Below are positions 2,163-63,981 of a stretch of 64,000 bases of DNA, piece by piece (the stretch's first letter is position 1; each line of letters starts with the position of its first letter). The notes below the pieces were generated by a model. The model did no database searches and had not been told where the DNA came from. It worked only from the letters and a program-made list of their open reading frames with translations. This stretch comes from Camelus ferus (taxonomy: Eukaryota): assembly GCF_009834535.1 (NCBI RefSeq), contig NC_045720.1, positions 32,364,001 through 32,428,000 on the forward strand. The letters run 5' to 3'. A program made the position numbers and the translations under genes.

Positions 2163-4677
2163 AATCCCGCAGTGTTTTAACCCAACTAAGATACTCAATT
2201 TATAAACAAGATAAGCTAAGTGGAGCAAGGTTAAATGCTTTACTCAAGTTTAGAGTTCCCAATTCCTGCCAGGTTGATGGGAGTTAAGGCTTTCCCCTGC
2301 CAATCGTATTCAGCGCCTTTGCTTTCTTCAGCCTCTCCCACTATCCTACTCCTACCCACTTTCATAGCTGAATCCTGTGATAAGGTCTTTTACAGTCACC
2401 TGGGCCCACACTAGGATTGCATTGTTAATTTTTTGATATCTCTTTCCACAACTGGAATGAAGAACTCCCTGGGGAGAAACTGAGCTTTTAGTTTTTTATT
2501 CCTTTCACTGTGAGACATATGAATATTGTATTCCTTTTTACTGCCTTCAATTTACAAGCAGTATCCTGCTTTTCTCCAAGTAAATACTTAGCACAGTGCA
2601 AAGCATATGAGTCCCAAATAAATGGCAGTTTATACTTCTTAGCCCTAGAAAACAATGTTTTTCTAAGTGCTGGTCACTCTTTGCAATCAAATGTGAAACC
2701 AATTTAGTGAGTCATAAGTATTGTTAAAGAAAAACAAACAGAATAGTTTGATATGTGTGTGTGGGGGTATTGTAATGGAAAATGTACTTTTTACTCTAGG
2801 GTGCAGTCAAAGACGTTTGAAAGCCACAATTTTGCAAATGTTGATAAACTTCTCCAACATATCTTTACCTTTAGACAGACAAATACTTTCTTTCACACAA
2901 TTAACATTCAACCACTCCATCAGTCTTCCCATTCTCCACTAGATACTAGATTTATTTATTTATTTCCCTGGTCCTTTACTCAAATGAAATGGAGAAGGCA
3001 TAAGTCCTAAGTTTGACGAGCATTTTTCACAGTACAAGTCCGTCGGAGTCTGCCTGAGTTCCTTCTTCTGATGGGTCATGTAAGTGTTGCGATGCACTTC
3101 AGATGGGCTCTTGGAGCACTTGCCTCTTGACTCAAGTCTATCTGAACTTCCAGACGTCCCAAACAGGGCTTTGAAATTTTCACAACCTGCTTCATCCACA
3201 CAGAGCCTAGGCTTATTAACTTCTGTAGTTTTTAAGACCACTTTTTTTTTTTCCTATCTTGGAGCCAGGTTCTTTATTTCCACCATAACATTATTTTCTG
3301 GTAATCCTTGATGCTCTCTACAAATTTAAACATAATTACGCATGTCCCAAATCAGTTCTATCTTCTCCTAACTTAAGGTAGTATTCATACTGACAAAACT
3401 GTATCCTTTTCTAGGCCTTGTATCTCACATCTTCTTCATCAGCGAGTCTAACCTAGGCCTAACAATGCAGTAACTGTAACCTGTCACGTCTCTAATATAG
3501 CCTTATTCTTTCTACTACCAGCAATACTCTCAAAATCCCACTTTCTCCAATAACTTTCCTAAATCCCTCCAACAGAACTAGTCTCCACTCTCCAGACCTC
3601 ATTACACTGCTCACACCTCTACAGCAGCTACCAGTCTATAAAATAGAATTATTTATGAATCTGTCTCCTACATTAGTTTCCACGACTAACTCCTATGTGT
3701 GTATCTCCCACTGCCCAGCAAACACCAGAGGGCATTTCACATAGTACTTTATCCTACTAGAAAGGTGAAGAGCTTAATTCAGTGGATATAAAAATAGGTG
3801 AGGAGCGGTTTCTAATTCCGCACGCCCTCTATACTCTGCTCAACTGTAAAGTATTTTTAAAAGATAGAAACTATGAAAGCTATAAGAGAAGAACCAGGGG
3901 GAAACAGCAATAAACAATGTAGAAATAAAACAGAAAGGCGTGATACAACGGATGTGATGCTCTCTGCATTTCCACACGTGGTCCGGTAAAGCGTGCCTGA
4001 ATCCCGTTCTCAGCCTGCACCATTCTGCTCTGTCATCCCTTTACTCGATTTCAAAACCTCCCGCACCACTTCGCTGAACTTGCTTTAGCGCTCTCTCAGA
4101 GGGCCAAGTATCCCAAAGCGTATCAAAAAAAGACTCCCTCTTGCCTTTCTCCTCTTCCGGCCTCCATTGGCCACATTCATAAGAATGAGAGTGGGCAACC
4201 ATTTCCCTTCAACAGTCCCAACTAAAATGGAAGCACGTCTAGACCTGCGTACCTTTAATCCTTAAGTAAGCCCCAGAGTTTCTAGGTCACCGTATATCGC
4301 CTTCACTACCTGCCACTTCAATGGGACTGAACTAGTAGGCTCTGTCTTCCAGCCGCGGTCTTGCCACAACTTCCCACCACCACATTAAGGTCCCATTACC
4401 CTCCACACATCGCAGCCTACCCCGTAGGCCTCAAGGAGGGTTGGCATGTCATTCTGGGGTCAAGGTTCCCGAAAACGGCTTGACCTCTGAGCGCTTTTAT
4501 TTAAACATGCCTCATACCTTCTAACTTCCTTCCTCGAAACTGATCTCCCCCCACCCGTCTTACACTTCCTGACTTTCCACCATTCTTCAAGTAACGTGTC
4601 CCCCGATCACCTCCTTCCCCTGGGGAGAACTGCGTTCCGGCTCTCGACTAACCTCGCTCTTTTCCTTTTCCATGCCC

Positions 4678-4712
4678 GGCTGGGGCGGCTGGGGCGGCTG
4701 GGGCGGCTGGGC
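4678..4712. repeat. 9-bp tandem repeat (GGCTGGGGC) x ~4
   Basis: Units start at 4678, 4687, 4696 and 4705. Confidence 0.95.
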
Positions 4713-4787
4713 TCGGCCGCCCGCTCGCTCGGGGGACTCCACGCCGGCCCCTCGCCCATACATCCCGCCGCTCCAACCCCTACTCAC

Positions 4788-5168
4788 TTTGGGCTTCTCG
4801 GGCAATTTCTTCCGGCTCTTCTTCTTCTGCTCCTCGCTCCTGAGATTCTTCAGCAGAGCTAGGTCGTCAGCGGCCGGGGCCGAAGCGGCCGCCGCCTCCT
4901 CCCGTTTGCGGGGCGGGTTCCTCCGCTTCTTGCGGGCGCCGGCGCAAGCCGCGGCCCAGCTGTAGCCGAGCAGGAAGATCAGCAGCAGCCCGAGCGCGCC
5001 CGTGCCCACCAGGATCACCCAGCCCNNNNNNNNNNNNNNNNNNNNNNNNNNNNNNNNNNNNNNNNNNNNNNNNNNNNNNNNNNNNNNNNNNNNNNNNNNN
5101 NNNNNNNNNNNNNNNNNNNNNNNNNNNNNNNNNNNNNNNNNNNNNNNNNNNNNNNNNNNNNNNNNNNN
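4788..5168 (-). CDS. MTDH: Metadherin (LYRIC/AEG-1) coding exon 1, codons 1-127; codons 1-48 lie in the N-run, so the ATG position is inferred
   Basis: Minus strand reads (P)GWVILVGTGALGLLLIFLLGYSWAAACAGARKKRRNPPRKREEAAAASAPAADDLALLKNLRSEEQKKKSRKKLPEKPK. This matches the MTDH N-terminal transmembrane segment and basic NLS region. It is followed by a canonical phase-0 donor AAA|GTGAGT at 4788/4787. With V51 at 5018-5016, counting back 50 codons puts ATG at 5168-5166. Confidence 0.95.
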
Positions 5169-5263
5169 NNNNNNNNNNNNNNNNNNNNNNNNNNNNNTGA
5201 CGCTGGGGCGCAGAGACGCCGTGGAAGAGTCAAGGGAAGCAAGGGAGGGCCGGCCGGACCGCC

Positions 5264-5278
5264 TCAGGCCGAGCGCAT
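5264..5278 (-). other. Upstream ORF (MRSA*) in MTDH 5'UTR
   Basis: ATG CGC TCG GCC TGA on the minus strand, G at -3. It is the only ATG in the visible 5'UTR. Confidence 0.75.
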
Positions 5279-5471
5279 CGCGGCCGCCCCTCGCGCCGGA
5301 GCCGGGGATCGGCCGCTGCCGCCGCCAGGATAAGGGGCTCTCAGTTCCCCCTTGTCAGCCTCACTCCGCCGCCGCCAGGAGGAGGGGGGCGGCGGGAGGG
5401 AGTGTCTCCAGTGGCGGCCGCTAAGCGGCGTCTCGGCGCCAGTGCCAGGCCCCGCTGTCCTCCCTCGGCGG

Positions 5472-5483
5472 AACAATGGCGGC
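5472..5483 (+). promoter_or_regulatory. YY1-like site (AACAATGGCGGC) at the approximate TSS
   Basis: Close match to the YY1 consensus AANATGGCGGC, in a position typical of TATA-less CpG promoters. Confidence 0.45.
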
Positions 5484-5528
5484 TCCGGCCGCGATCCACG
5501 CCGCGCGCGCAGACGACGACTGGGCCGC

Positions 5529-5592
5529 GGGTCACGTGTGCGCCCGTGGGCGGGGCTAGGGTCACGTGGGTGCGGGCGAAGCCGGGCGGGGC
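5529..5592. promoter_or_regulatory. Two GGGTCACGTG E-boxes (5529-5538, 5559-5568) plus GC boxes GGGCGGGGC (5548-5556, 5584-5592)
   Basis: Motifs read directly just upstream of the 5'UTR. The human AEG-1/MTDH promoter is known to use two E-boxes bound by c-Myc. Confidence 0.75.
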
Positions 5593-7459
5593 GGGAGCCG
5601 TTGGGCCGGAGCCGTTAAGGCGAGAGCGCGGCGGTGGCGGTTGGCGGTGACCCTCTTGGGCCTGGTGGAGGCGCTGAGGCTTGGGGGCCGGTGACTGTGG
5701 ACGGGAAGCTGGGAGGGGTTAACTGGAGGAAACCTTTGCCGGGTGGCTGGTGGCCCGGAGCTGGGAGACGTGGCACTTTGAATGAGTCCCGGGGAGGGGC
5801 TCTCGAGGAAGCCTGGGAGCTGGGAGGGGGTGTGGAAGAGGGCAAAGAGCGGGGAACCGAGTCTTGGGGTCGAGGTCAGAGTCGCCCTAGTAGGTGTCTG
5901 GTTTTTTTCTTCTTCTTTTTTTTTTTTTTTTTTTCTGGGAGTGGTGTTGGGGTGGAAGCGGCTTTTTCTCCCTGGGTCTGCTAGATGCTTCCAGAGTGGG
6001 CTCAGCTAAGTCTAAGCCGGCACTCTTCGTCCAGGGCCTAGTTTAGCTCACAAACTGGGTCTCTGTTCAGGGCCGCTTACCCGTTGCGCACCGACCGTTT
6101 ACCTGCCTGGCTGGGGCGCTTTCGCGTGGTTTCGCACCTTCCCAGAATTCAAAAGTTGGAAAGCCCGTGGGCAGCATTATTCTCCTACTCATTTGTAGCT
6201 TTAATAAGAAATGAGAAGAGAGGCACATTAGGTTGTGTTTTACACGTAGAGGTAGTTTCGTCTTTGCGTTTTAAGTTTTATGCAAGACCACAAGGACTTT
6301 CCAAAGATTCTATTTTTATATCCTGTGTTGACCGTATCTGGGTAGCGTTAGGAAGAAATGAATTTTTAAATTTAAGTTACAAAGATGATATTTGGAGGCT
6401 GCCTTAGGGTTTTGAAGTTGTATTTCCCTATAAGGAAACTGTTTTATCATTAAGTGATAATTAATATGTAAGCAAGTGTCTTAAGTGAACTAAATACAGG
6501 CTTTCTCAAAAGAATAGAAAGGGGGTAACGTTAATAAGTACCGAATGTCAAAAATGTATTTAGGAGTATTTTGACCTACTTTGCAACTGTGTTGTAAAGC
6601 ATGTTGTGATTAATGGGTGGAAGGGAGTTTTGTAAATAATAATAAACTGCTACTCTTGCTAAGCTTTATACAGACTTATAATTAAAGACACTGTAAATTA
6701 CAAGGCCAAAAATTTAGAAGATGTCATTGGAACTACTTCATCTCTTAAAGGTTCCAAATTCCACTTATATTTATGAAAGTAGATTTATAATTCTACATTT
6801 ATGTTTTGGTTCCAGAGACATGAAGGGTGATGATTTTTCCTAAGAAATTCCACTGCCTATTCTAGGTTAATACCTATGGATTTATGAATTAAGCTATTAC
6901 ACATGTAGTAATAGTAGCTGGGTTTGCCTGTTCCTTTTGCAGCCTAGCAAGTATTGATTATGTAAAATCCTATTACCTTCTTTTTTTTCTGTGACTCTTT
7001 AAGCTTAAAAAATTGTTTACTGTATTTGGTAATACAGATAAAATCATTTTTCGTATGTAACTTTGTAGTCATCTTTTCAAGTATTTTTATTTTAAAAACA
7101 AAAATGGAGTCATACACTGTTTACTGTTTTGCATTTAATGCGATCATGAACATTCGTGTCAATTGATAAAGCTCACCAGGAACATACCTGTAGCTAACAA
7201 AGTTGGGTTCATTAACTTGCAGCAGAATGAAGTTTAGGTGAAATTTAAATGAAGCAATGCTTTGAAAAGCTCAAAGAACACTGTCTAAAAGAGTTAATAT
7301 TAGGTCTGGCGTAAATGGACTCAGAATCCTAATTCCTTGAAAATGGCAACGTTAAGAGAAATGTGAAATGTCGTTTCTGAAACCTCTTTCCTTGAAGCAA
7401 CTGGATTGAAAATGAATACTACTTATTGTGAGAGTCAAAGTGACCCATATGATGAGATG

Positions 7460-11934: not shown

Positions 11935-13325
11935 TCAAAGTTGGGAAAGTTGGGCAAAATATGGTTTGCAAGTCTGTGGGGGAACAGACATTCTCATACA
12001 GTGTTGATGAGAATAAATAGGGACATAACATTCCGAAGGCAGTTTGGCAATATAGATTTTTTTTTTAAATCAAAAGCTCAAAAGGCTAATAATTATTTGA
12101 ACCAGCCAAGTTCACAGCTAAGAAATTGTCCAAAGGAAATAATTGGACAAATGCGCAAAAGTGAAATCACATAGTCCTTACGTTGTAGTTTACAATCTGA
12201 AAAAATTGGAAGCAACCTAATGAGGTGATCGTTTGAATACAGTATGACATATACAAGGATAGGAATATTATGAAGTCATTAAAAATGTGTCATATATCTG
12301 TGTATTTCAGTTATTCCTAAAGCCACACTGTGAAGGGAAAAAACCAGGTTACAAAATAACATGCTGAGTATTAGATCACTAAAATTTTAGAATATGTATA
12401 TGTGTATACAGAGATAAGAATCTGGAAAGATATTCCCCCAAATCTCTACAATAGGTTGTAATAGCCACAAATGGGAACTAGGATTTTGAGGTGTTTTTAT
12501 TTTTTAATTTTTTTCTATATACTCTTCTGAATTGCTTGAATGTTTTATATGAATATATATTATTCTTTTTTTAAAAATCTGCATTTTAAAATTGAAGTAT
12601 AGTTGATTTACAATGTTGTGTAATTTCAGGTGTACAGCAAAGTGATTCAGTTATTTATATATATGTGTGTGTGTGTGTGTGTATATACATACATAAATAT
12701 ATATATATATATTCTTTTTCAGATACTTTTCCATTCTAGGTTATCACAAGATATTGAAGATTGTTCCCTGTGCTATACAGTAGGTCTTTGTTGTTTATAG
12801 TTTAACTTTTACATATAGTACTATGTATCTGTTAATCCCAGACTCTTAATTTATCACCCACTACCTTCCTATTTGGTAACCATAGTTTGTTTTCTATGTC
12901 TGTGAGTCTATTTCTGGTTTGTAAATAAATTCATTTGTATAATTTTTGTTTAGATTCCAAATATAAGTGATATCATATATTATTTGTCTTTGTCTGCCTT
13001 ACTTCACTTATGATGATCTCTAGGTCCATCCATGTTGCTGCAAATAACATTATTTTTTATGGCTGAGTACTAGTCCATTGGATATATACCACAAGTTCTT
13101 TATCCAGTCATCTGTTGATGAACATTTAGGATGCTTCCATGTCTTGATTATTGTAAAGAGTGCTGCTATGAACATTGGGATGCATGCATCTTTTTGAATT
13201 AGAGTTTTCTCCAGATTTTGGGATTTTGTTTTGTTTGGTTTTTTTAACTTTTTTTCTATACAATCTTCTGAATTGCTTGAATATTTTATATGAATATATA
13301 TTATTCTTTTAATCAGAATAAAATA
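11935..13325 (+). mobile_element. Old L1ME-type 3' fragment, interrupted by a younger L1 at 12570-13216
   Basis: GGGAACAGACATTCTCATACAGTGTTGATGAGAAT...GGCAGTTTGGCAATAT...GGAAGCAACCTAA. Confidence 0.65.
12570..13216 (-). mobile_element. 5'-truncated cetartiodactyl/camelid L1 3' end with (TA)/(TG) microsatellite
   Basis: Poly-T, TTGAAGTATAGTTGATTTACAATGTTGTG, and antisense ORF2 C-terminus (GGTCCATCCATGTTGCTGCAAAT). Flanked by a long direct duplication ending at TTTT/AA. Confidence 0.92.
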
Positions 13326-14735: not shown

Positions 14736-15139
14736 TGTCTTAGTCAGCTTGCACTGCTCTGTNNNNNNNNNNNNNNNNNNNNNNNNNNNNNNNNNNNNNN
14801 NNNNNNNNNNNNNNNNNNNNNNNNNNNNNNNNNNNNNNNNNNNNNNNNNNNNNNNNNNNNNNNNNNNNNNNNNNNNNNNNNNNNNNNNNNNNNNNNNNNN
14901 NNNNNNNNNNNNNNNNNNNNNNNNNNNNNNNNNNNNNNNNNNGGGGAGAGAAAAATCTCTGGCATTTCTTCCTCTTCTTATAAAGATGACAGTCCTACTG
15001 GATTAGGGCTCCACCCTTATGACCTTATTTGACCCCAGTTACCTCCTTAAAGGCCATATCTCCAAATGCAATCACACGGGGGGGGGGGTTAGGGGTTCAA
15101 CATCTGAGTTTTAGAGGGGACACAGTTTAGTCCATACCG
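14736..15139 (-). mobile_element. MLT1A-type MaLR solo LTR (contains a 180-N run)
   Basis: TGTCTTAGTCAG...TTAAAGGCCATATCTCCAAAT...TAGTCCATAC; 5-bp TSD CAGGA at 14731-14735 and 15140-15144. Confidence 0.88.
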
Positions 15140-22759: not shown

Positions 22760-23200
22760 TTTCCTAAGTTCATTCATTTAATTTATTTTTTAATTGAAGT
22801 ATAGTGTTTACAATGTGTCAATTTCTGGCGTACAGCATAATGTTTCAGTCATACATATACATACATATATTCCTTTTCGTTATAGGTTACTACAAGATAT
22901 TGAATATAGTTCTCTGCACTATACAGTAGAAACTTGTTTATTTTATATGTAGTAGTGTGTATCCATTAATCCCAAACTCCTAGTTTATCCCTTCCCACCC
23001 ACTTTCCCCCTTGGCAACCATAAATTTATTTTCTATGTCTGTGAGTCTGTTTCTGTTCTGTAAATAAGTTCTTTTGTGTCTTTTTTTTTTTTTTTTTTTT
23101 TTTTTTAGATTCCACATATGGGTGATATCATATGGTATTTGTCTTTCTTTCTGGCTTACTTCACTTAGTATGACGATCTCCAGGTCCATCCATGTTGCTG
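22760..23200 (-). mobile_element. 5'-truncated camelid L1 3' end
   Basis: ORF2 C-terminal peptide (W)MDLEIVILSEVSQKE plus 3'UTR; degenerate 18-bp TSD (15/18) at 22742-22759 and 23201-23218. Confidence 0.9.
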
Positions 23201-24499
23201 CTGAATGTTTCCATATTTAGAAGGCATTGATGGGAAGGAGGGAAGGCTGGGGCTGTAGTGGTGGCTGTGAGAAAGGGGGGGTAGGTTTGAGCCCCACCCC
23301 GCTCTCACTGCCTTCATCATACAGTAATAACATGTGAAAGGAAGAACCAAAGGCTCATACCATGTGAAAGACGCATTTTATATCAAAGGAAGAACCAAAG
23401 TTTGTTTCCTGATTGGATATGGGAACAGAGAAGGAATCTAGCTTGACCACTTGAATGGCAGATAATATTAACCATGGGCACGTTGAGGGCTTTAAACACG
23501 ATGTATTCTCACTTGCATACTTACTGCTTTTGCAGGTAATACCATTATAATCGGAGCGTTTCCTCTAATGAGATGAATTTCCTCTGTCTTAGCAGTGCTT
23601 ACAATGACAAGTCTTTTAGGATGAAAGCACCATGACAAGTTATCTAGCGCAGATGGGCTTCTTGTATATAACAATTCTGTTAAGGAAAAAAAGTTCATGA
23701 ATTTGTGTAAAGCTTATCACCAGTAACCTACTGATTAACTTCAAAGTTCAGCCCTGAGAAAGGTAAACTGCATCCTACTACAATATTTCAGGCATATATA
23801 GGCAATGAGGGATTTTTTTTTTAACTGTTTAGATCCTGAGAAGAAATCTCAATGGAAAAAATTCCCCCATTCTGCATGCCATGCAATGACATCCTTTCAG
23901 TTCATATCTGAGGGTGATAATGTGCATAGACAGTACTATCCACATTTGCTTGTATTTAATTAATGTCCAATTTATTATAATTGTAAATGGGGAAAATTTA
24001 TTTTTCTTAAGCTCCTAGGTCCAATTTGTTATTTTGTTAATAAATCTTGTGAATTTTTGTAGAAGTTAAGCAAAATTGCTTTCTCTTGCTTTTTAAATCA
24101 ATGTTCCATTAACTTACAAATTCAACAGATTAAATTCCCCTAGCTAAAACTAGTTTATTGAGTTTCCTGAAACATTTCAAAGTGCTATTACAAGTTTAAT
24201 ACCATAGCATCACATCTAAGATACCATCAATTGTAAGATGCACCATTATTTCATGTAGTGTCATGAAAGGAAAAATACTGCCAATGCTATCTTACCACAT
24301 TGATCGTAAGTCACTCTCAGGTGGCAGATTTGTTAAAATGAGAAGAAAAATGCATCTTGGACTTGAAAAACTATTGTATATCTGAATATCTTAAGTAGTG
24401 CAAATGCAGGGCATTTTGTGTGTTAGGTTTGAACCAGACAAAATCCTTCTAAGCATTTAAGCCACTCTTGTAAATCTAAATACATTAGATTAATATACA

Positions 24500-26479: not shown

Positions 26480-27020
26480 CCAGTTAAAAAGACACAATAC
26501 CCAGGAACTTTTGGTCACGAGGGATGGCCTTGTGCCTGATTCTGGCCAAGAGGTATAAGCAGAAGTCCAGAGGTGGGGGTTCTGGGAAAGTGAGTATTTC
26601 TCATACATATATAAAAATATGTTTATATATATATAAATATAATATAATATATAATACATAATATAATATAAAAGTATATTATATAATACACATTATATAA
26701 GATATAAATATATAAAAGTATTTTATATATATGTATAAGAAGAGCACACTTAGAAAATATGTGTGTTTTGACTTCTCCCTATCTGGAATGTAGATGTAAT
26801 ACCTGGAGATGGAGTAACCCTCTATGACCATGAAGAAAGAAGAGAACCACATGCTGAAGACTGAGCAGGAGGCTAAAGGACGCCGAGGCCTTGATGACAT
26901 CTGCGAATAAATGCATGAGGCCTGGTCTACCTGCTTTTGGACTTGTTACACCAGAAAAAGAATCCTTCTTTAAGATGCTGTAATTGAGTTCCTGTTACAT
27001 GCAGGCGAAATGTACCGTTA
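26480..27020 (+). mobile_element. MLT1J-type MaLR LTR interrupted by an AT-rich tract
   Basis: TTCTGGCCAAGAGGTATAAGCAGAAGTC at the 5' side; GAGGCCTTGATGACATC...CTGTTACATGCAG at the 3' side. Confidence 0.65.
26605..26735. repeat. Degenerate (TA)n / AT-rich low-complexity tract
   Basis: Almost entirely A/T with TATA/TAATA periodicity. Confidence 0.9.
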
Positions 27021-28623: not shown

Positions 28624-28740
28624 AGGAGGGAGGTAGGTATAGCTCAGTGGTAGAGCATGTTCTTAGCATACACAGGGTCCTAGGCTCAATCCCCAGTACT
28701 TCTATTAAAAAAATTGAAAAAAAAAAAGTACAAATTAAAA
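28624..28740 (+). mobile_element. Vic-1-type SINE
   Basis: GGTATAGCTCAGTGGTAGAGC...TTAGCAT...GGCTCAATCCCCAGTAC plus A-rich tail; partial TSD TAAATGGTA. Confidence 0.88.
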
Positions 28741-46232: not shown

Positions 46233-46372
46233 TAGAAGTATAGTTAATTTACAGTGTTGTGTTAGTTTCTGGTGTACAGCAAAGTGATTCAGTTACACAC
46301 ATACATATATATATTCTTTTTCAGATTCTTTTCCATTATAGGTTATTATAAGATATTGAATATAGTTCCCTG
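46233..46372 (-). mobile_element. Short camelid L1 3'UTR fragment
   Basis: GAAGTATAGTTAATTTACAGTGTTGTG...TTATAAGATATTGAATATAGTTCCCTG. Confidence 0.85.
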
Positions 46373-49140: not shown

Positions 49141-50049
49141 GGTGCCACAACCCATGACTCATAAAACCAGTGCTGGGGAGGACAGTCCAAGTGGGCTCAG
49201 AGGGCTTATCTGATTGTTTTTATTGTTGCCACCCCTTCAAGGCTTTGTCCCCAGAGGTCCCACGGTGATCCTCACTTCTGTGTCTGTATTCTGTGTATAA
49301 ATAGCACCTGGGACACTCCTCAGATAGAAATTGGGGCTAAAGTATCACTTTGAACCGTATAAATCTCTTCAGGTCTAATAAGCCAAAAATTTCATGAATA
49401 TTAAATCTCTCACCTGGTAAGTAAACCTGGGGATATCTAACTCCATGCCATTCAGAAAAGGAGATGAACATATTTTGGGCTGAAAGGGAACATTGGGCTT
49501 TACTAAGTAGTGAATTACCATCACAAAACTACCAGCCAAGTTTGAAAGAACTGCTGGCTAAGAGCTATGTCCCTTAAGCCAAGGGTCTAGTACAAGCCAC
49601 CCCTGTTTCCTTTGTGGCCCCATCTTCCCATTTCTGCTGAATCGAGAGCCAGGAGAGTTGCCCTGGGGCCTGCCACAGCAAAAGGCGAGGGGACCCTGAG
49701 TCCTGGGCGGAGAATCATTGGAAGGACCTCAGCACCTGAGCAAGTCCAGGTGGATGTGCAGGCAGGGAGGCAGGCCAGTCTGAGGTGTCGGAGCCCAAGC
49801 AGAAGGAGGCGGGCATACATGGGGGGCGGGGCCACATGGGGTGTAAGATCCCAAGCTAAGTGGGACACATCCTGTGTAATGGGGCCATGTAGCCCAGTAC
49901 TTGCTATCAGAGTCCGCATGAGATGAACAGGGCATCTGTGTGAGGCAGACCCACCCTGGCACTGTGTGCTGGATCCCAGTTGGGTAAGAGGGATATTCAC
50001 ATGTGAGGCGACCTGGTGGGGGAGCCAGGGCCTGAGAGGGGGAGAAGTA

Positions 50050-51250
50050 AAATACATTGAAGATCATGAGAGCAAAATTTCTCATTGTCAGAGAAGGGGG
50101 TTACAAATACGGAAAGGGAGAAAACGGCTGAGCTTCTGTTGTTAGTTTGGAATTAGAGATATCGCTGTGAGTTCATGGTGTTCATTACACACAGACGGAT
50201 AGAGAATTTCTGGGGGGGCAGAGCCAAGATGGCGGAGTAGAGAGACCCAGAGCTCGCCCTCTCCCACAAATACACCAAGAATTACGTCTACAAACCCACT
50301 GAACCACACAGAACACCTACTGAACACTGGCAGAGTGTCTCTCGTTTCAAAATACAGGAGGATTCTCACAAAATCCGATAAACAACAAGTTCATACTGTC
50401 TAGCACAGGGAACTATATTCAATATCTTGTAGTAACCTATGGTGGGAAAGAATAGGAAAATGAATATATGTGTGTTCCTGTATGGCTGACGTATTGTGCT
50501 GTACACCAGACATCAGCACAACATTGTAAACTGACTACACTTCATTGACAAAAGGAAAAAAAAATAGATGGATAGAAATNNNNNNNNNNNNNNNNNNNNN
50601 NNNNNNNNNNNNNNNNNNNNNNNNNNNNNNNNNNNNNNNNNNNNNNNNNNNNNNNNNNNNNNNNNNNNNNNNNNNNNNNNNNNNNNNNNNNNNNNNNNNN
50701 NNNNNNNNNNNNNNNNNNNNNNNNNNNNNNNNNNNNNNNNNNNNNNNNNNNNNNCCTGTCACCTGAGAGGGCCTGAGTGTAGTACACTGATTATATTTAG
50801 TGTAATCTCCACTAAAAGGATCCAGGACCACTTGGAGAAAAGGCTGATTCCAGAGTAGAGGAAGGAAAAATACAAGATGAGCCCCAAATGCCTTCTTGTG
50901 CCAAAGAATTCAACGCCAGCTTGATAATAATGGATTAAGGTCCATTGAATAAAATAAAACCATGAATCAATATCATATAAATAAGTGAATAAATTGAAAT
51001 ATTAATGAGGAACAAGATCTCTACATAGTCTCAAGGTGTTACAAAACAGGCAGTCATTACAAAGGGGAAGGGCGTAGCCTCGCAGTGGACGAGCCTGGCA
51101 GACACCACCTTAACCTAGTGATGAAAGGCAGTTATCACCAGCGATAGGTCCTGATGGGCTGCAGTGACAACAACTCGGCATCACGTCTGTGACATTCCTG
51201 CCAAATGGTGTCAAACCCAGATCTCATCACCAGAAAGCATCCGAGACTGA
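50050..51250 (+). mobile_element. Old L1MC1-3-type 3' end (host of the mini-L1)
   Basis: AATACATTGAAGATCATGAGAGCAAAATTTCTCATTGTCAGAGAAGGG...GGACCACTTGGAGAAAAGGCTGATTCCAG...CCTGGCAGACACCACCTTAACC. Confidence 0.75.
50212..50564 (+). mobile_element. Internally deleted mini-L1 (5'UTR start fused to 3'UTR end plus poly-A)
   Basis: GGGGGGGCAGAGCCAAGATGGCGG L1 5' terminus; junction at ~50377; L1 3'UTR; A-tail; TSD AGAYGGATAGA at 50193-50203 and 50566-50576. Confidence 0.85.
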
Positions 51251-58285: not shown

Positions 58286-59529
58286 CACTCTTGCGCCCCA
58301 TGACTCTTCATGCGGACAACTACAGTGGGAACACCTGTCCTACATGCATAAGCCTCACCCCCATGACTGAAGGGGGATGTGGTTCTGGAGACCTGGAGAG
58401 AGGGTGCAATGTGGAAGGGAAAACCTCCTGTACTGGGGTGAATCCAAGTGGAACGTATCTGCTATCTCCCTAGAGCCAGGACATTGATAGAATATTCCCC
58501 TTCTATTGCAGAAGAACGGGTTCCCTTAAAAGTAAAATCCTCTGCTCCAGCCCAGCCCTTTCTCATTTTACGAGGGAAGAGGATGAGGTTCAGGGACAGG
58601 AAGTGACTTGCCCAGGATCCCACAGGTAACTGATGGCTAATGGGGACTGGAAGGTGGGTCTCTCCCACCCCTCAGGTTTTCCCACCGTCAAAGTGGTCCC
58701 AGTATAATAAGTTCCTTTATCTTTTGTTTTGTTTTCTAAGGCGATTAGCTGACTGTCTGGTGTGCCAAATTAGTGAAATTTGAAGCCTTCTGAGTGAAGG
58801 TAAACAAGAATTAAACAAATCAAGTAATTTACAAGAAATCCAGATGGTAATTAAAAGGATTAATCCTGGTGTTTCTAAATGACAAACAGTTATCTTAATT
58901 ATTAATTGCTAAATTAAATGTGCCAGCCTCATATGTTCTCATATTGTTCTGATTTACTCATCATCACTGTACAGAAGAGAAGTGGAAAACATAAACTAAC
59001 CACATGTAAGTTTCTATATTCATGAGCAGATGCAAGAATAGGACAGGTCCCACGAGTGGAAAAGGGTCACTGACACAGAACTCCCTCCAGCCTAGGGCAG
59101 CGCTGAGCCTGTGTGACCCTCTGCCTCTAAGAAATGGTGTCCTGATCTGAAAATCCAGAGCTGAAGATACAGTGCTTTTCCATGGAGCTCAGTTTATGGA
59201 GAATTGGTTGGAAAAAACAGCCATGAAAGCCTTGAGACTGCCCCCGGTAGGTCTTCAGTATCTGAGCGTTTTATAGGGACCTTACTGAGGGAGTTCCTTT
59301 GGATTTTGGTAGACCACCCTCTGGTGGCCAAATATTTTCCTGCAGGCTTTCCCGCAGGAAAACAAAACGAAACAAAACCCAGTATGAGTGGAGTAATTTA
59401 GGAACCACCATTTTTCTGGCGTTTCTGTACCTCTTTTAGGAAAGCATTCTACTGCTTCACACATTTTATGTTCAACAAAATTTTACTACGTCTCAACCTG
59501 GATTACCTTTGATGCTGCTTAAATTCTTT

Positions 59530-59629
59530 TTTTTTATATTGAAGTATACTCAGTTTACAATGTTGCGTCCATTTCTGTTGCACAGCATAATATTTCAGTC
59601 ATACATGTACCTAAACACATTCCTCTTCA
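59530..59629 (-). mobile_element. 100-bp 5'-truncated camelid L1
   Basis: Poly-T plus TTGAAGTATACTCAGTTTACAATGTTG; TSD CTG(C/T)TTAA(A/G)TTCTTT at 59515-59529 and 59630-59644. Confidence 0.85.
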
Positions 59630-62994: not shown

Positions 62995-63981
62995 AGAATA
63001 TACCAACAGCTCATACAACTCAGTAACAAAAAAACAAACAACCCAATTCAAAAGTGGGCAGAAGACCTAAGCAGACATTTCTCCAATGAAGAGATACAGA
63101 TGGCCAATAGGCACATGAAAAAATGCTCAATATCGCTAATTATCAGAGAAATGCAAATCAAAACTACAATGAGGTACTACCTCACCATCATTCAAAAGTN
63201 NNNNNNNNNNNNNNNNNNNNNNNNNNNNNNNNNNNNNNNNNNNNNNNNNNNNNNNNNNNNNNNNNNNNNNNNNNNNNNNNNNNNNNNNNNNNNNNNNNNN
63301 NNNNNNNNNNNNNNNNNNNNNNNNNNNNNNNNNNNNNNNNNNNNNNNNNNNNNNNNNNNNNNNNNNNNNNNNAACTGTAATTTGATAAGNNNNNNNNNNN
63401 NNNNNNNNNNNNNNNNNNNNNNNNNNNNNNNNNNNNNNNNNNNNNNNNNNNNNNNNNNNNNNNNNNNNNNNNNNNNNNNNNNNNNNNNNNNNNNNNNNNN
63501 NNNNNNNNNNNNNNNNNNNNNNNNNNNNNNNNNNNNNNNNNNNTGCAGCAACATGGGTGTTCCTGGAGAATGTCATTCTAAGTGAAGTAAGCCAGAAAGA
63601 GAAAGAAAAATACCATATGCTACCACTCATACGTGAAATCTTAAAAAAAAAAAAAAAAGGACACAAATGAACTTATTTATAAAACAGAAAAACAGGGACA
63701 GACTCACAGACATAGGAAACAAACTTATGATTACCAGAGGGGGAAAGGGGGTGAAGAGCGAGAAATTGTGAGTTAGGGATTTGCAGATACATACTACTAT
63801 ATATAAAATAGATAAACAACAGGGTCCTACTGTATAGCACGGGGAACTGGAACTATAGTCAATACCTTGCAATGGCTTATAATGAAAAAAACCATGGAAA
63901 GAAATATTTATGTACGTCTAACTGAATCACTATGCTGTACACCAGAAACTAACACAGCATTGTAAACCGACTACACTTTAA
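62995..63981 (+). mobile_element. 5'-truncated camelid L1 (ORF2 C-terminus plus 3'UTR), containing two N-runs
   Basis: Translates [62 protein letters not shown], and after the gaps ATWVFLENVILSEVSQKEKEKYH. Possible decayed TSD at 62980-62994 / 63982-63996. Confidence 0.92.

Follow-up and report, generated by a model that had tools for sequence, protein, structure and literature searches.

The stretch of DNA considered here, called the window throughout, comprises 64,000 nucleotides of the Camelus ferus contig NC_045720.1 (positions 32,364,001 to 32,428,000, forward strand; the coordinates below are counted from its first base). At 50193-50579 it carries an element of about 350 nt in which what appears to be the 5′ terminus of an L1 retrotransposon, a long interspersed element (LINE), is fused directly to an L1 3′ end with an A-tail, and which has a target-site duplication (TSD) of the sequence AGAYGGATAGA at both ends. 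For its analysis, the contigs of three DNA runs (X1, X2 and X9, one per organism, from three organisms) and of one RNA run (X17) were aligned on 49950-50579 at 80% likeness. All piece-level results given below rest on the 32 pieces listed of about 77,000 that aligned, and overlapping contigs of one assembly represent different loci. The parts of the element, with untranslated regions abbreviated as 5′UTR and 3′UTR and open reading frames as ORFs, are the following:

50193-50203 (+): 5′ copy of the TSD, AGACGGATAGA, sharing 10 of 11 positions with 50566-50576; the sole mismatch is CpG/TpG
up to 50207 (+): possible extension of the 5′ TSD, GAAT versus AAT on the 3′ side
50204-50211 (+): eight bases, GAATTTCT, between the core TSD and the G-run; either a continuation of the TSD or untemplated, extra 5′ bases
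50212-50220 (+): G-run plus CA, GGGGGGGCA, the 5′ end of the element, with seven G at 50212-50218
50221-50376 (+): predicted L1 5′UTR start segment (the head), 156 nt, matched from 50221-50223 by contigs of all four runs
50225-50235 (+): YY1 consensus motif CAAGATGGCGG, a sequence motif within the head
50376/50377 (+): junction, ...CACAAAATCC/GATAAACAAC..., a CpG; it can be read as TCCG/ATAAAC or as TCC/GATAAAC, the G being assignable to either side
50377-50549 (+): L1 3′ terminal segment, apparently the whole 3′UTR plus a few bases or codons at the ORF2 end, with 72-83% identity to the L1 3′ ends of the window
50550-50564 (+): degenerate poly(A) tail, AAAAGGAAAAAAAAA, A-rich and directly before the 3′ TSD
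50566-50576 (+): 3′ copy of the TSD, AGATGGATAGA, followed by AAT and then by an N-run from 50580

The element as an L1-mobilised insertion

Since the element is bounded by an A-tail and by a TSD of 11 nt or more, it is an L1-mobilised retrotransposed insertion with the hallmarks of target-primed reverse transcription. The chance of a 10/11 match between the two TSD copies, calculated by hand, is about 8e-6 at one fixed offset and about 0.007 over approximately 30 x 30 placements. The AAT behind the 3′ copy (to 50579) may prolong the duplication, and the N-run that starts four bases past this copy masks whatever more of the duplication may follow. The pre-insertion site reads ...TTACACAC/AGAYGG, with no clean TTTT/AA; the endonuclease consensus is loose, and the insertion is old. 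A single open frame spans the junction, without a start codon, and the element codes for nothing. A preliminary description of the sequence had reported AGAYGGATAGA on both sides and had taken the element as a single retrotransposition product lacking ORF1 and ORF2, and both statements are borne out by the two TSD copies, the tail and the lack of any ORF with a start codon. Scans of 49900-50579 gave no Rfam family match at E ≤ 1 and no tRNA, the RNA of the element folds no better than shuffled sequence (z −0.12), and the antisense open frame 50145-50390, when used as a protein query, yielded no candidate.

The head opens with GAGCCAAGATGGCGG from 50221, or, in a longer reading of its start, with GAGCCAAGATGGCGGAGTAGAG. 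Few other copies align over the preceding G-run and CA at 50212-50220; most alignments start at 50219-50223, and the 50202-50222 bin is shallow. The L1-like 5′ terminus, with its G-run and with a YY1 site at 50225-50235, had already been pointed out in the preliminary description and is indeed seen in the sequence. The same 11-mer, CAAGATGGCGG, is the YY1 site of the MRPL42 promoter, where it has been validated by chromatin immunoprecipitation and reporter assays (PMC7974901), and GCCAAGATGGCCG is present in the standard YY1 consensus probe (PMC4763200). The canonical L1 start motif, and copies that run from the head into longer sequence, make the start of an L1 5′UTR the best reading of the head.

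When the element was compared with the window by BLAST, 50377-50563 matched five other L1 3′ ends with 72-83% identity (46235-46372 (-), 22786-22938 (-), 12707-12798 (-), 63811-63978 (+) and 59524-59628 (-)), and the first 185 nt of the element, which hold the head, had no second copy in the window. L1 3′ ends of other laurasiatherian hosts are 78-83% identical to the 3′ segment of the element, which measures about 186 nt and is followed by the A-tail; this type of L1 3′ end points to a laurasiatherian mammal. Homology to the L1 copies of the window begins at GATAAACAAC, so that the jump from 5′UTR-like sequence into an L1 3′ end and A-tail, placed earlier at about 50377, is found as a junction at 50376/50377. 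In ordinary L1s, TATATAAAATAG precedes this point, and an AG therefore stands before ATAAAC. This AG, also remarked upon before, is present both in the window copies and in a loose-end consensus (...TTGCAGATACAAACTACTATATATAAAATA), built where ordinary L1 3′ ends leave the element at 50377 from 545-908 ends per DNA run and 225 ends in the RNA run.

To place the start of the 3′ segment relative to ORF2, translations were made of the window's L1 copies and of two L1 3′ ends found in other hosts. In the 22.9-kb and 12.8-kb copies, and in contigs L007 and L012, the ORF2 stop lies about 45 nt upstream of the junction point (...GRDKLGVWD, then stop), and in a TAA to TTG variant, represented by the 63.8-kb copy and by the majority of loose ends, it lies 24 nt downstream of the junction (...DLQI..YKIDKQQGPTV, then stop). 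Depending on the subfamily, the 3′ segment starts with the last eight or so codons of the extended ORF2 frame or with the first bases after the stop. Judged from these translations, the retained segment is the whole 3′UTR, give or take a few codons. Its previous identification as an L1 3′ end thus stands, and its description as only the last part of the 3′UTR does not, since it begins no more than about 45 nt from the ORF2 stop and takes in essentially all of the 3′UTR.

The ORF2 ends in the window deserve a separate remark. Among the L1 copies at 63544-63860, 22900-23230 (-) and 12740-13200 (-), the frame ends either in ...VWD with a TAA stop or 20 codons later in ...KIDKQQGPTV, and the longer end looks like a subfamily-specific C-terminal extension of ORF2p. 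The ORF2 C-terminal fragment at 22983-23216 (-) also contains an in-frame A-run that gives eight or nine lysine codons (...MWNLKKKKKKKKRHK...), and the 63.8-kb L1 copy has shorter lysine runs at the equivalent place. This fragment had 658 matches in a protein collection, nearly all of them from ENA metagenome assemblies and at most 72% identical, and none in viral contigs. Contigs L007-L012, which lie behind two of the 658 matches, carry laurasiatherian L1 3′ ends, with a ruminant-type short interspersed element (SINE) in L007, and were taken to be of non-human origin; they showed no match to the head and no ORF1 or reverse transcriptase motif, and the called-gene coordinates of L007 gave no clean translation.

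Recurrence of the junction

A piece was counted as bridging if it covered at least 31 letters on either side of 50376/50377. The junction is bridged in this sense by 15 of the 32 pieces listed, in all four runs, with 84-90% identity to this copy and with unrelated flanks (records 1, 4, 5, 6 and 7 of X1; records 18, 19 and 23 of X2; records 30, 31 and 32 of X9; and records 9, 14, 15 and 16 of X17, the RNA run). The bridging pieces differ from this copy at 8-16% of positions, with mismatch and gap numbers individual to each, and records 7 and 23 cross the junction gap-free. Their 5′ end is constant: the match stops at 50221 in records 1, 9, 18 and 19 and at 50226 in record 4, and these five records carry 460-490 nt of unrelated sequence beyond 50221. 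X1 by itself holds at least five further copies among its eight pieces listed. Because the flanks of the bridging records do not match this locus, the copies are separate insertions and not the products of segmental duplication. The same junction and the same 5′ end in different flanks make this a multi-copy family of separate insertions. Such recurrence is what the preliminary description had asked for before speaking of a SINE-sized, L1-derived family, and it was found in these 15 records from four runs. We regard the central proposition, a recurrent ORF-less L1 derivative family that is mobilised in trans, as very probably correct.

A one-off event or artefact, meaning a single internal deletion of an L1, the segmental duplication of such a deletion, or the collapse of a 6-kb L1 by the assembler, might be suspected from the N-run that starts four bases after the 3′ TSD, and also from the pieces listed, among which no contig of this very locus runs across the junction (record 25 of X9, which matches 49950-50276 with one mismatch, stops at 50276). 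Such an origin is nevertheless most improbable in view of the 15 bridging records with their different mismatch patterns, unrelated flanks and distribution over four runs, and of the TSD and tail that the element has of its own. The locus itself is present in 20 public runs from 10 studies and three organisms, and 14 runs contain 81-94% of the sampled words of 49600-50579, which also speaks against an artefact. A single-locus origin is refuted by the bridging records. The two outcomes that the preliminary description had named as fatal to its proposal, a single-locus junction and an assembly artefact, are both excluded.

The CpG at the junction has decayed in many copies, with C>T at 50376 and G>A at 50377 each accounting for about 1/5 to 2/5 of the depth. 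Distinct contigs with T at 50376 number 21-46 per DNA run and 15 in the RNA run, and those with A at 50377 number 17-45 per DNA run and 12 in the RNA run. By these counts there may be tens of loci, perhaps a hundred or more, some of which may be parent-type 5′UTRs that reach the junction base; summed depth is no copy number, and no copy figure was taken from it. The copy at 50193-50579 departs at six head positions (50247, 50250, 50256, 50286, 50304 and 50326) from about 90% or more of the others, and its private changes amount to about 4-6%. Together with the CpG decay, the degenerate tail and the CpG change in the TSD, these private head changes indicate age, and the copy is an old, fixed insertion.

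In addition to the bridging pieces there is a second class of contigs, which match from 50221 to 50374-50376 and then end or diverge (for 225 nt in record 12 of X17 and for 51 nt in record 22 of X2). This class behaves as the 5′UTR of a longer parent element would, and the head is present in many more contigs than the junction. These contigs also bear on the source of the head. One could imagine a composite, SINE-like family, in which the head came from another repeat or gene start that is transcribed by RNA polymerase II (Pol II) and shares a YY1-type motif, and in which the L1 tail was acquired. The absence of another head copy from the window would agree with such a composite; moreover, the L1 identity of the head rests on the GGGGGGGCAGAGCCAAGATGGCGG start motif and on the L1 5′UTRs known from artiodactyls, and a full-length L1 with this head upstream of ORF1 was not among the sequences compared. 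We still consider a composite improbable, since the G-run and the GAGCCAAGATGG behind it at the beginning of the head form the canonical L1 start, known from human L1 as well, since in so many contigs the head runs into other sequence after 50376, and since neither an Rfam nor a tRNA match was obtained. If the head is of L1 origin, the element joins the 5′ and 3′ ends of a LINE with the coding part missing, which is a feature of deletion derivatives of the RIME and NARTc type; the sharing of one internal junction by many copies at different loci is another.

Two further observations concern this region. A small, uniform set of contigs (9, 8, 14 and 3 in the four runs, with an agreement of 0.74-0.98) follows the head only to 50300 and then continues as CAGCCAACCAGAGCACCTGCGGAA..., and represents either another 5′UTR variant or a further class of rearranged L1 head. 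The flank at 50055-50138 is itself repeated: X1, X2 and X17 have depth there but none in the adjoining flank, and in X9 the depth is 72-141 as compared with 39 beside it.

Origin of the junction and growth of the family

Three routes fit the junction: splicing, a jump of the reverse transcriptase from the ORF2/3′UTR boundary to the 5′UTR of the same or of another L1 RNA, and a deletion within a genomic L1. A splice origin is strengthened by the AG before ATAAAC and by the G at the end of the head, the AG preceding the 3′ breakpoint when the junction G is counted to the 5′ side. It is weakened by the acceptor context in parent L1s, which is pyrimidine-poor (...ACTACTATATATAAAATAG; 8 pyrimidines in the 19 nt before the AG), and by a better-looking TTTGCAG, 25 nt upstream of the acceptor AG in the loose-end consensus, that is left unused. 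Both sides of the junction contain AAAAT followed, after one or two bases, by G (CACAAAATCCG versus TATAAAATAG), which would weakly favour a homology-assisted jump or deletion; this support is weak because only the G sits at the junction itself. Template switching by ORF2p is the standard explanation of U6/L1 and similar chimeras (bioRxiv 10.1101/2025.02.02.635956). We judge it slightly more probable that the junction arose by a template switch of the reverse transcriptase or by a deletion than by splicing.

The parent 5′UTR was also sought in large contig collections. The 19-mer of 50352-50370 had six matches in JGI metagenome contigs, all of them chance matches of 19-20 nt, a 28-nt degenerate 5′UTR pattern had none in viral and GTDB contigs, and a 20-mer of the L1 start had three in GTDB and viral contigs, which were bacterial and due to chance.

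The reading that we favour, with a probability of roughly 0.55 for the statement as a whole, is that the segment at about 50212-50564 is a copy of an ORF-less mini-L1 family that was mobilised in trans and amplified from transcribed masters. One founding event would have made the junction, keeping the transcription start region of L1 together with the L1 3′ end and its poly(A) signal. A mini-L1 master, transcribed from base 1, would then have spread as an L1 parasite, in the way that RIME and NARTc depend on ingi and L1Tc, and its RNA would have been copied in trans by the ORF1p and ORF2p of complete L1s, the only route that established L1 biology leaves to an element that encodes nothing (PMC5860796). 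The constant 5′ end and the YY1 box fit RNAs that start at the presumed L1 transcription start.

The family could instead have grown by recurrent splicing, as in the spliced integrated retrotransposed elements (SpIREs), from a 5′UTR donor after ...AAAATCCG to the AG at the ORF2/3′UTR boundary, so that each copy is an independent trans insertion and the copies do not propagate. Exactly the same junction in all bridging copies is what such splicing would produce; the parent L1 3′ regions read ...AAAATAG/ATAAAC, and the 5′ segment ends in G, which is the commonest last base of an exon. Human SpIREs with a 5′UTR donor are also documented (PMC5860796). The weak acceptor and the stronger, unused CAG 25 nt upstream of it speak against splicing, as does the need of an ORF-less RNA for both proteins in trans at each event, which is inefficient (PMC5860796), yet the bridging records account for around half of the longest head pieces listed. 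Amplification from masters is thus favoured on balance, because an ORF-less RNA made anew each time would be a poor substrate, yet bridging and parent-type copies occur about equally often among the longest head pieces; recurrent splicing as the source of the family appears to us unlikely, although it is the strongest of the alternatives.

Several points nevertheless weigh against amplification from masters. The frequency argument is soft, since short elements are rarely 5′-truncated and are hence over-represented among copies that keep the head. Repeated splicing at fixed sites would equally leave one and the same junction in every copy, the AG before the 3′ segment and the G ending the 5′ segment are as at real splice sites, and a spliced RNA of a full-length L1 would share its first base with the mini-L1s. 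Record 9, a bridging record of the RNA run, has 486 nt of upstream sequence, which indicates read-through, intronic RNA or DNA. In human L1, a 5′UTR cut to its first ~97 nt plus distal parts showed weak activity, about 7-fold over a promoter-less vector, and human SpIREs were judged to be dead ends (PMC5860796). L1 proteins also prefer their own RNA in cis (PMC5860796), and an ORF-less L1 RNA should therefore be a poor substrate. As the library of the RNA run may contain DNA or intronic RNA, its bridging contigs do not count as evidence of autonomous expression. A more far-reaching version of the favoured reading, namely that a laurasiatherian L1 lineage spawned a self-transcribed, 350-nt promoter-plus-tail parasite which begins at the transcription start of L1, receives its poly(A) at the L1 signal, overcame the cis-preference and reached tens to hundreds of copies, is possible and is put forward here tentatively.

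Related elements and other features of the window

Mammalian L1 proteins have a strong preference for the RNA that encodes them, and the known parasites of L1 either get round it by special tricks (Alu at the ribosome, SVA) or, like HAL1, still encode ORF1p. We know of no RIME/ingi-type pair that is an established textbook case for mammalian L1, and a literature search found no mammalian L1 family described that consists of head plus tail without ORFs; Dfam and Repbase lay outside this search, and repeat libraries may hold a consensus under an L1 label. Like SINEs with LINE tails and processed pseudogenes, the mini-L1 is short, would use LINE proteins in trans and has a tail or poly(A) in common with its partner LINE. 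However, SINE heads derive from small RNAs of RNA polymerase III, whereas the head of the mini-L1 would be the LINE's own Pol II start region, and it has no tRNA, 7SL or 5S match.

By analogy of function and anatomy, the nearest relatives appear to be RIME and NARTc. The RIME/ingi and NARTc/L1Tc pairs of trypanosomes consist of an autonomous LINE and a short, non-coding derivative with an internal deletion (PMC3820030), which keeps the first tens to hundreds of bases of the LINE, in NARTc/L1Tc with an internal promoter (PMC3820030; PMC3383444). As with RIME and NARTc, both LINE ends are kept in the mini-L1, including the poly(A) 3′ end, and the short element would be moved by the machinery of the long one (PMC3820030; PMC3383444). 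Unlike the mini-L1, RIME and NARTc belong to the ingi clade of LINEs and to protist hosts, and their promoter function has been demonstrated, whereas that of the mini-L1 is predicted.

The SpIREs resemble the mini-L1 in that an internal piece is lost between fixed points and in that they have a true L1 5′ start, a TSD and a tail (PMC5860796). Their donor lies about 100 nt into the 5′UTR, and they are of the intra-5′UTR or 5′UTR/ORF1 type, at approximately 1.8% of full-length L1s (PMC5860796). They keep ORF2 and mostly also ORF1, in contrast to the mini-L1, which is without both ORFs, has its 3′ point at the ORF2/3′UTR boundary and has splice sites that are only candidates. HAL1, a non-autonomous L1 derivative that encodes ORF1p, arose several times in mammals by internal loss from L1 (PMC5753468). 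The mini-L1 differs from it in having no ORF1 sequence, in encoding nothing and in being SINE-sized (about 350 nt), and a motif scan found no L1 ORF1 or reverse transcriptase motifs.

If the favoured reading is true, the mini-L1 would be the mammalian counterpart of RIME and NARTc and a natural minimal definition of an RNA that is taken by L1 proteins in trans. A family that has nothing of L1 but its 156 initial and ~186 final nucleotides, and that nevertheless multiplied, would mark the parts that suffice for trans-mobilisation and for transcription initiation, and would show that internally deleted L1s are not always dead ends, contrary to what was concluded for human SpIREs. For annotation, a mini-L1 copy can easily be recorded as a 5′ and a 3′ fragment of two different L1s, which inflates the counts of 'full-length 5′ ends' in this genome.

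Elsewhere in the window, the sole Rfam match at the gathering score is a tRNA at 28633-28704 (+) (32.4 bits), which more probably represents a SINE head of tRNA origin than a gene. A GC-rich block at 4001-6000 (GC 0.57 versus about 0.38 around it), which has long open frames on both strands and contains an N-run at 5026-5197, looks like a CpG island or promoter region. This N-run is one of five of 154-180 bases, the others being at 14763-14942, 50580-50754, 63200-63372 and 63390-63543. Finally, an AT-rich tandem array with a period of about 34 and about 3.8 copies occupies 26603-26732.

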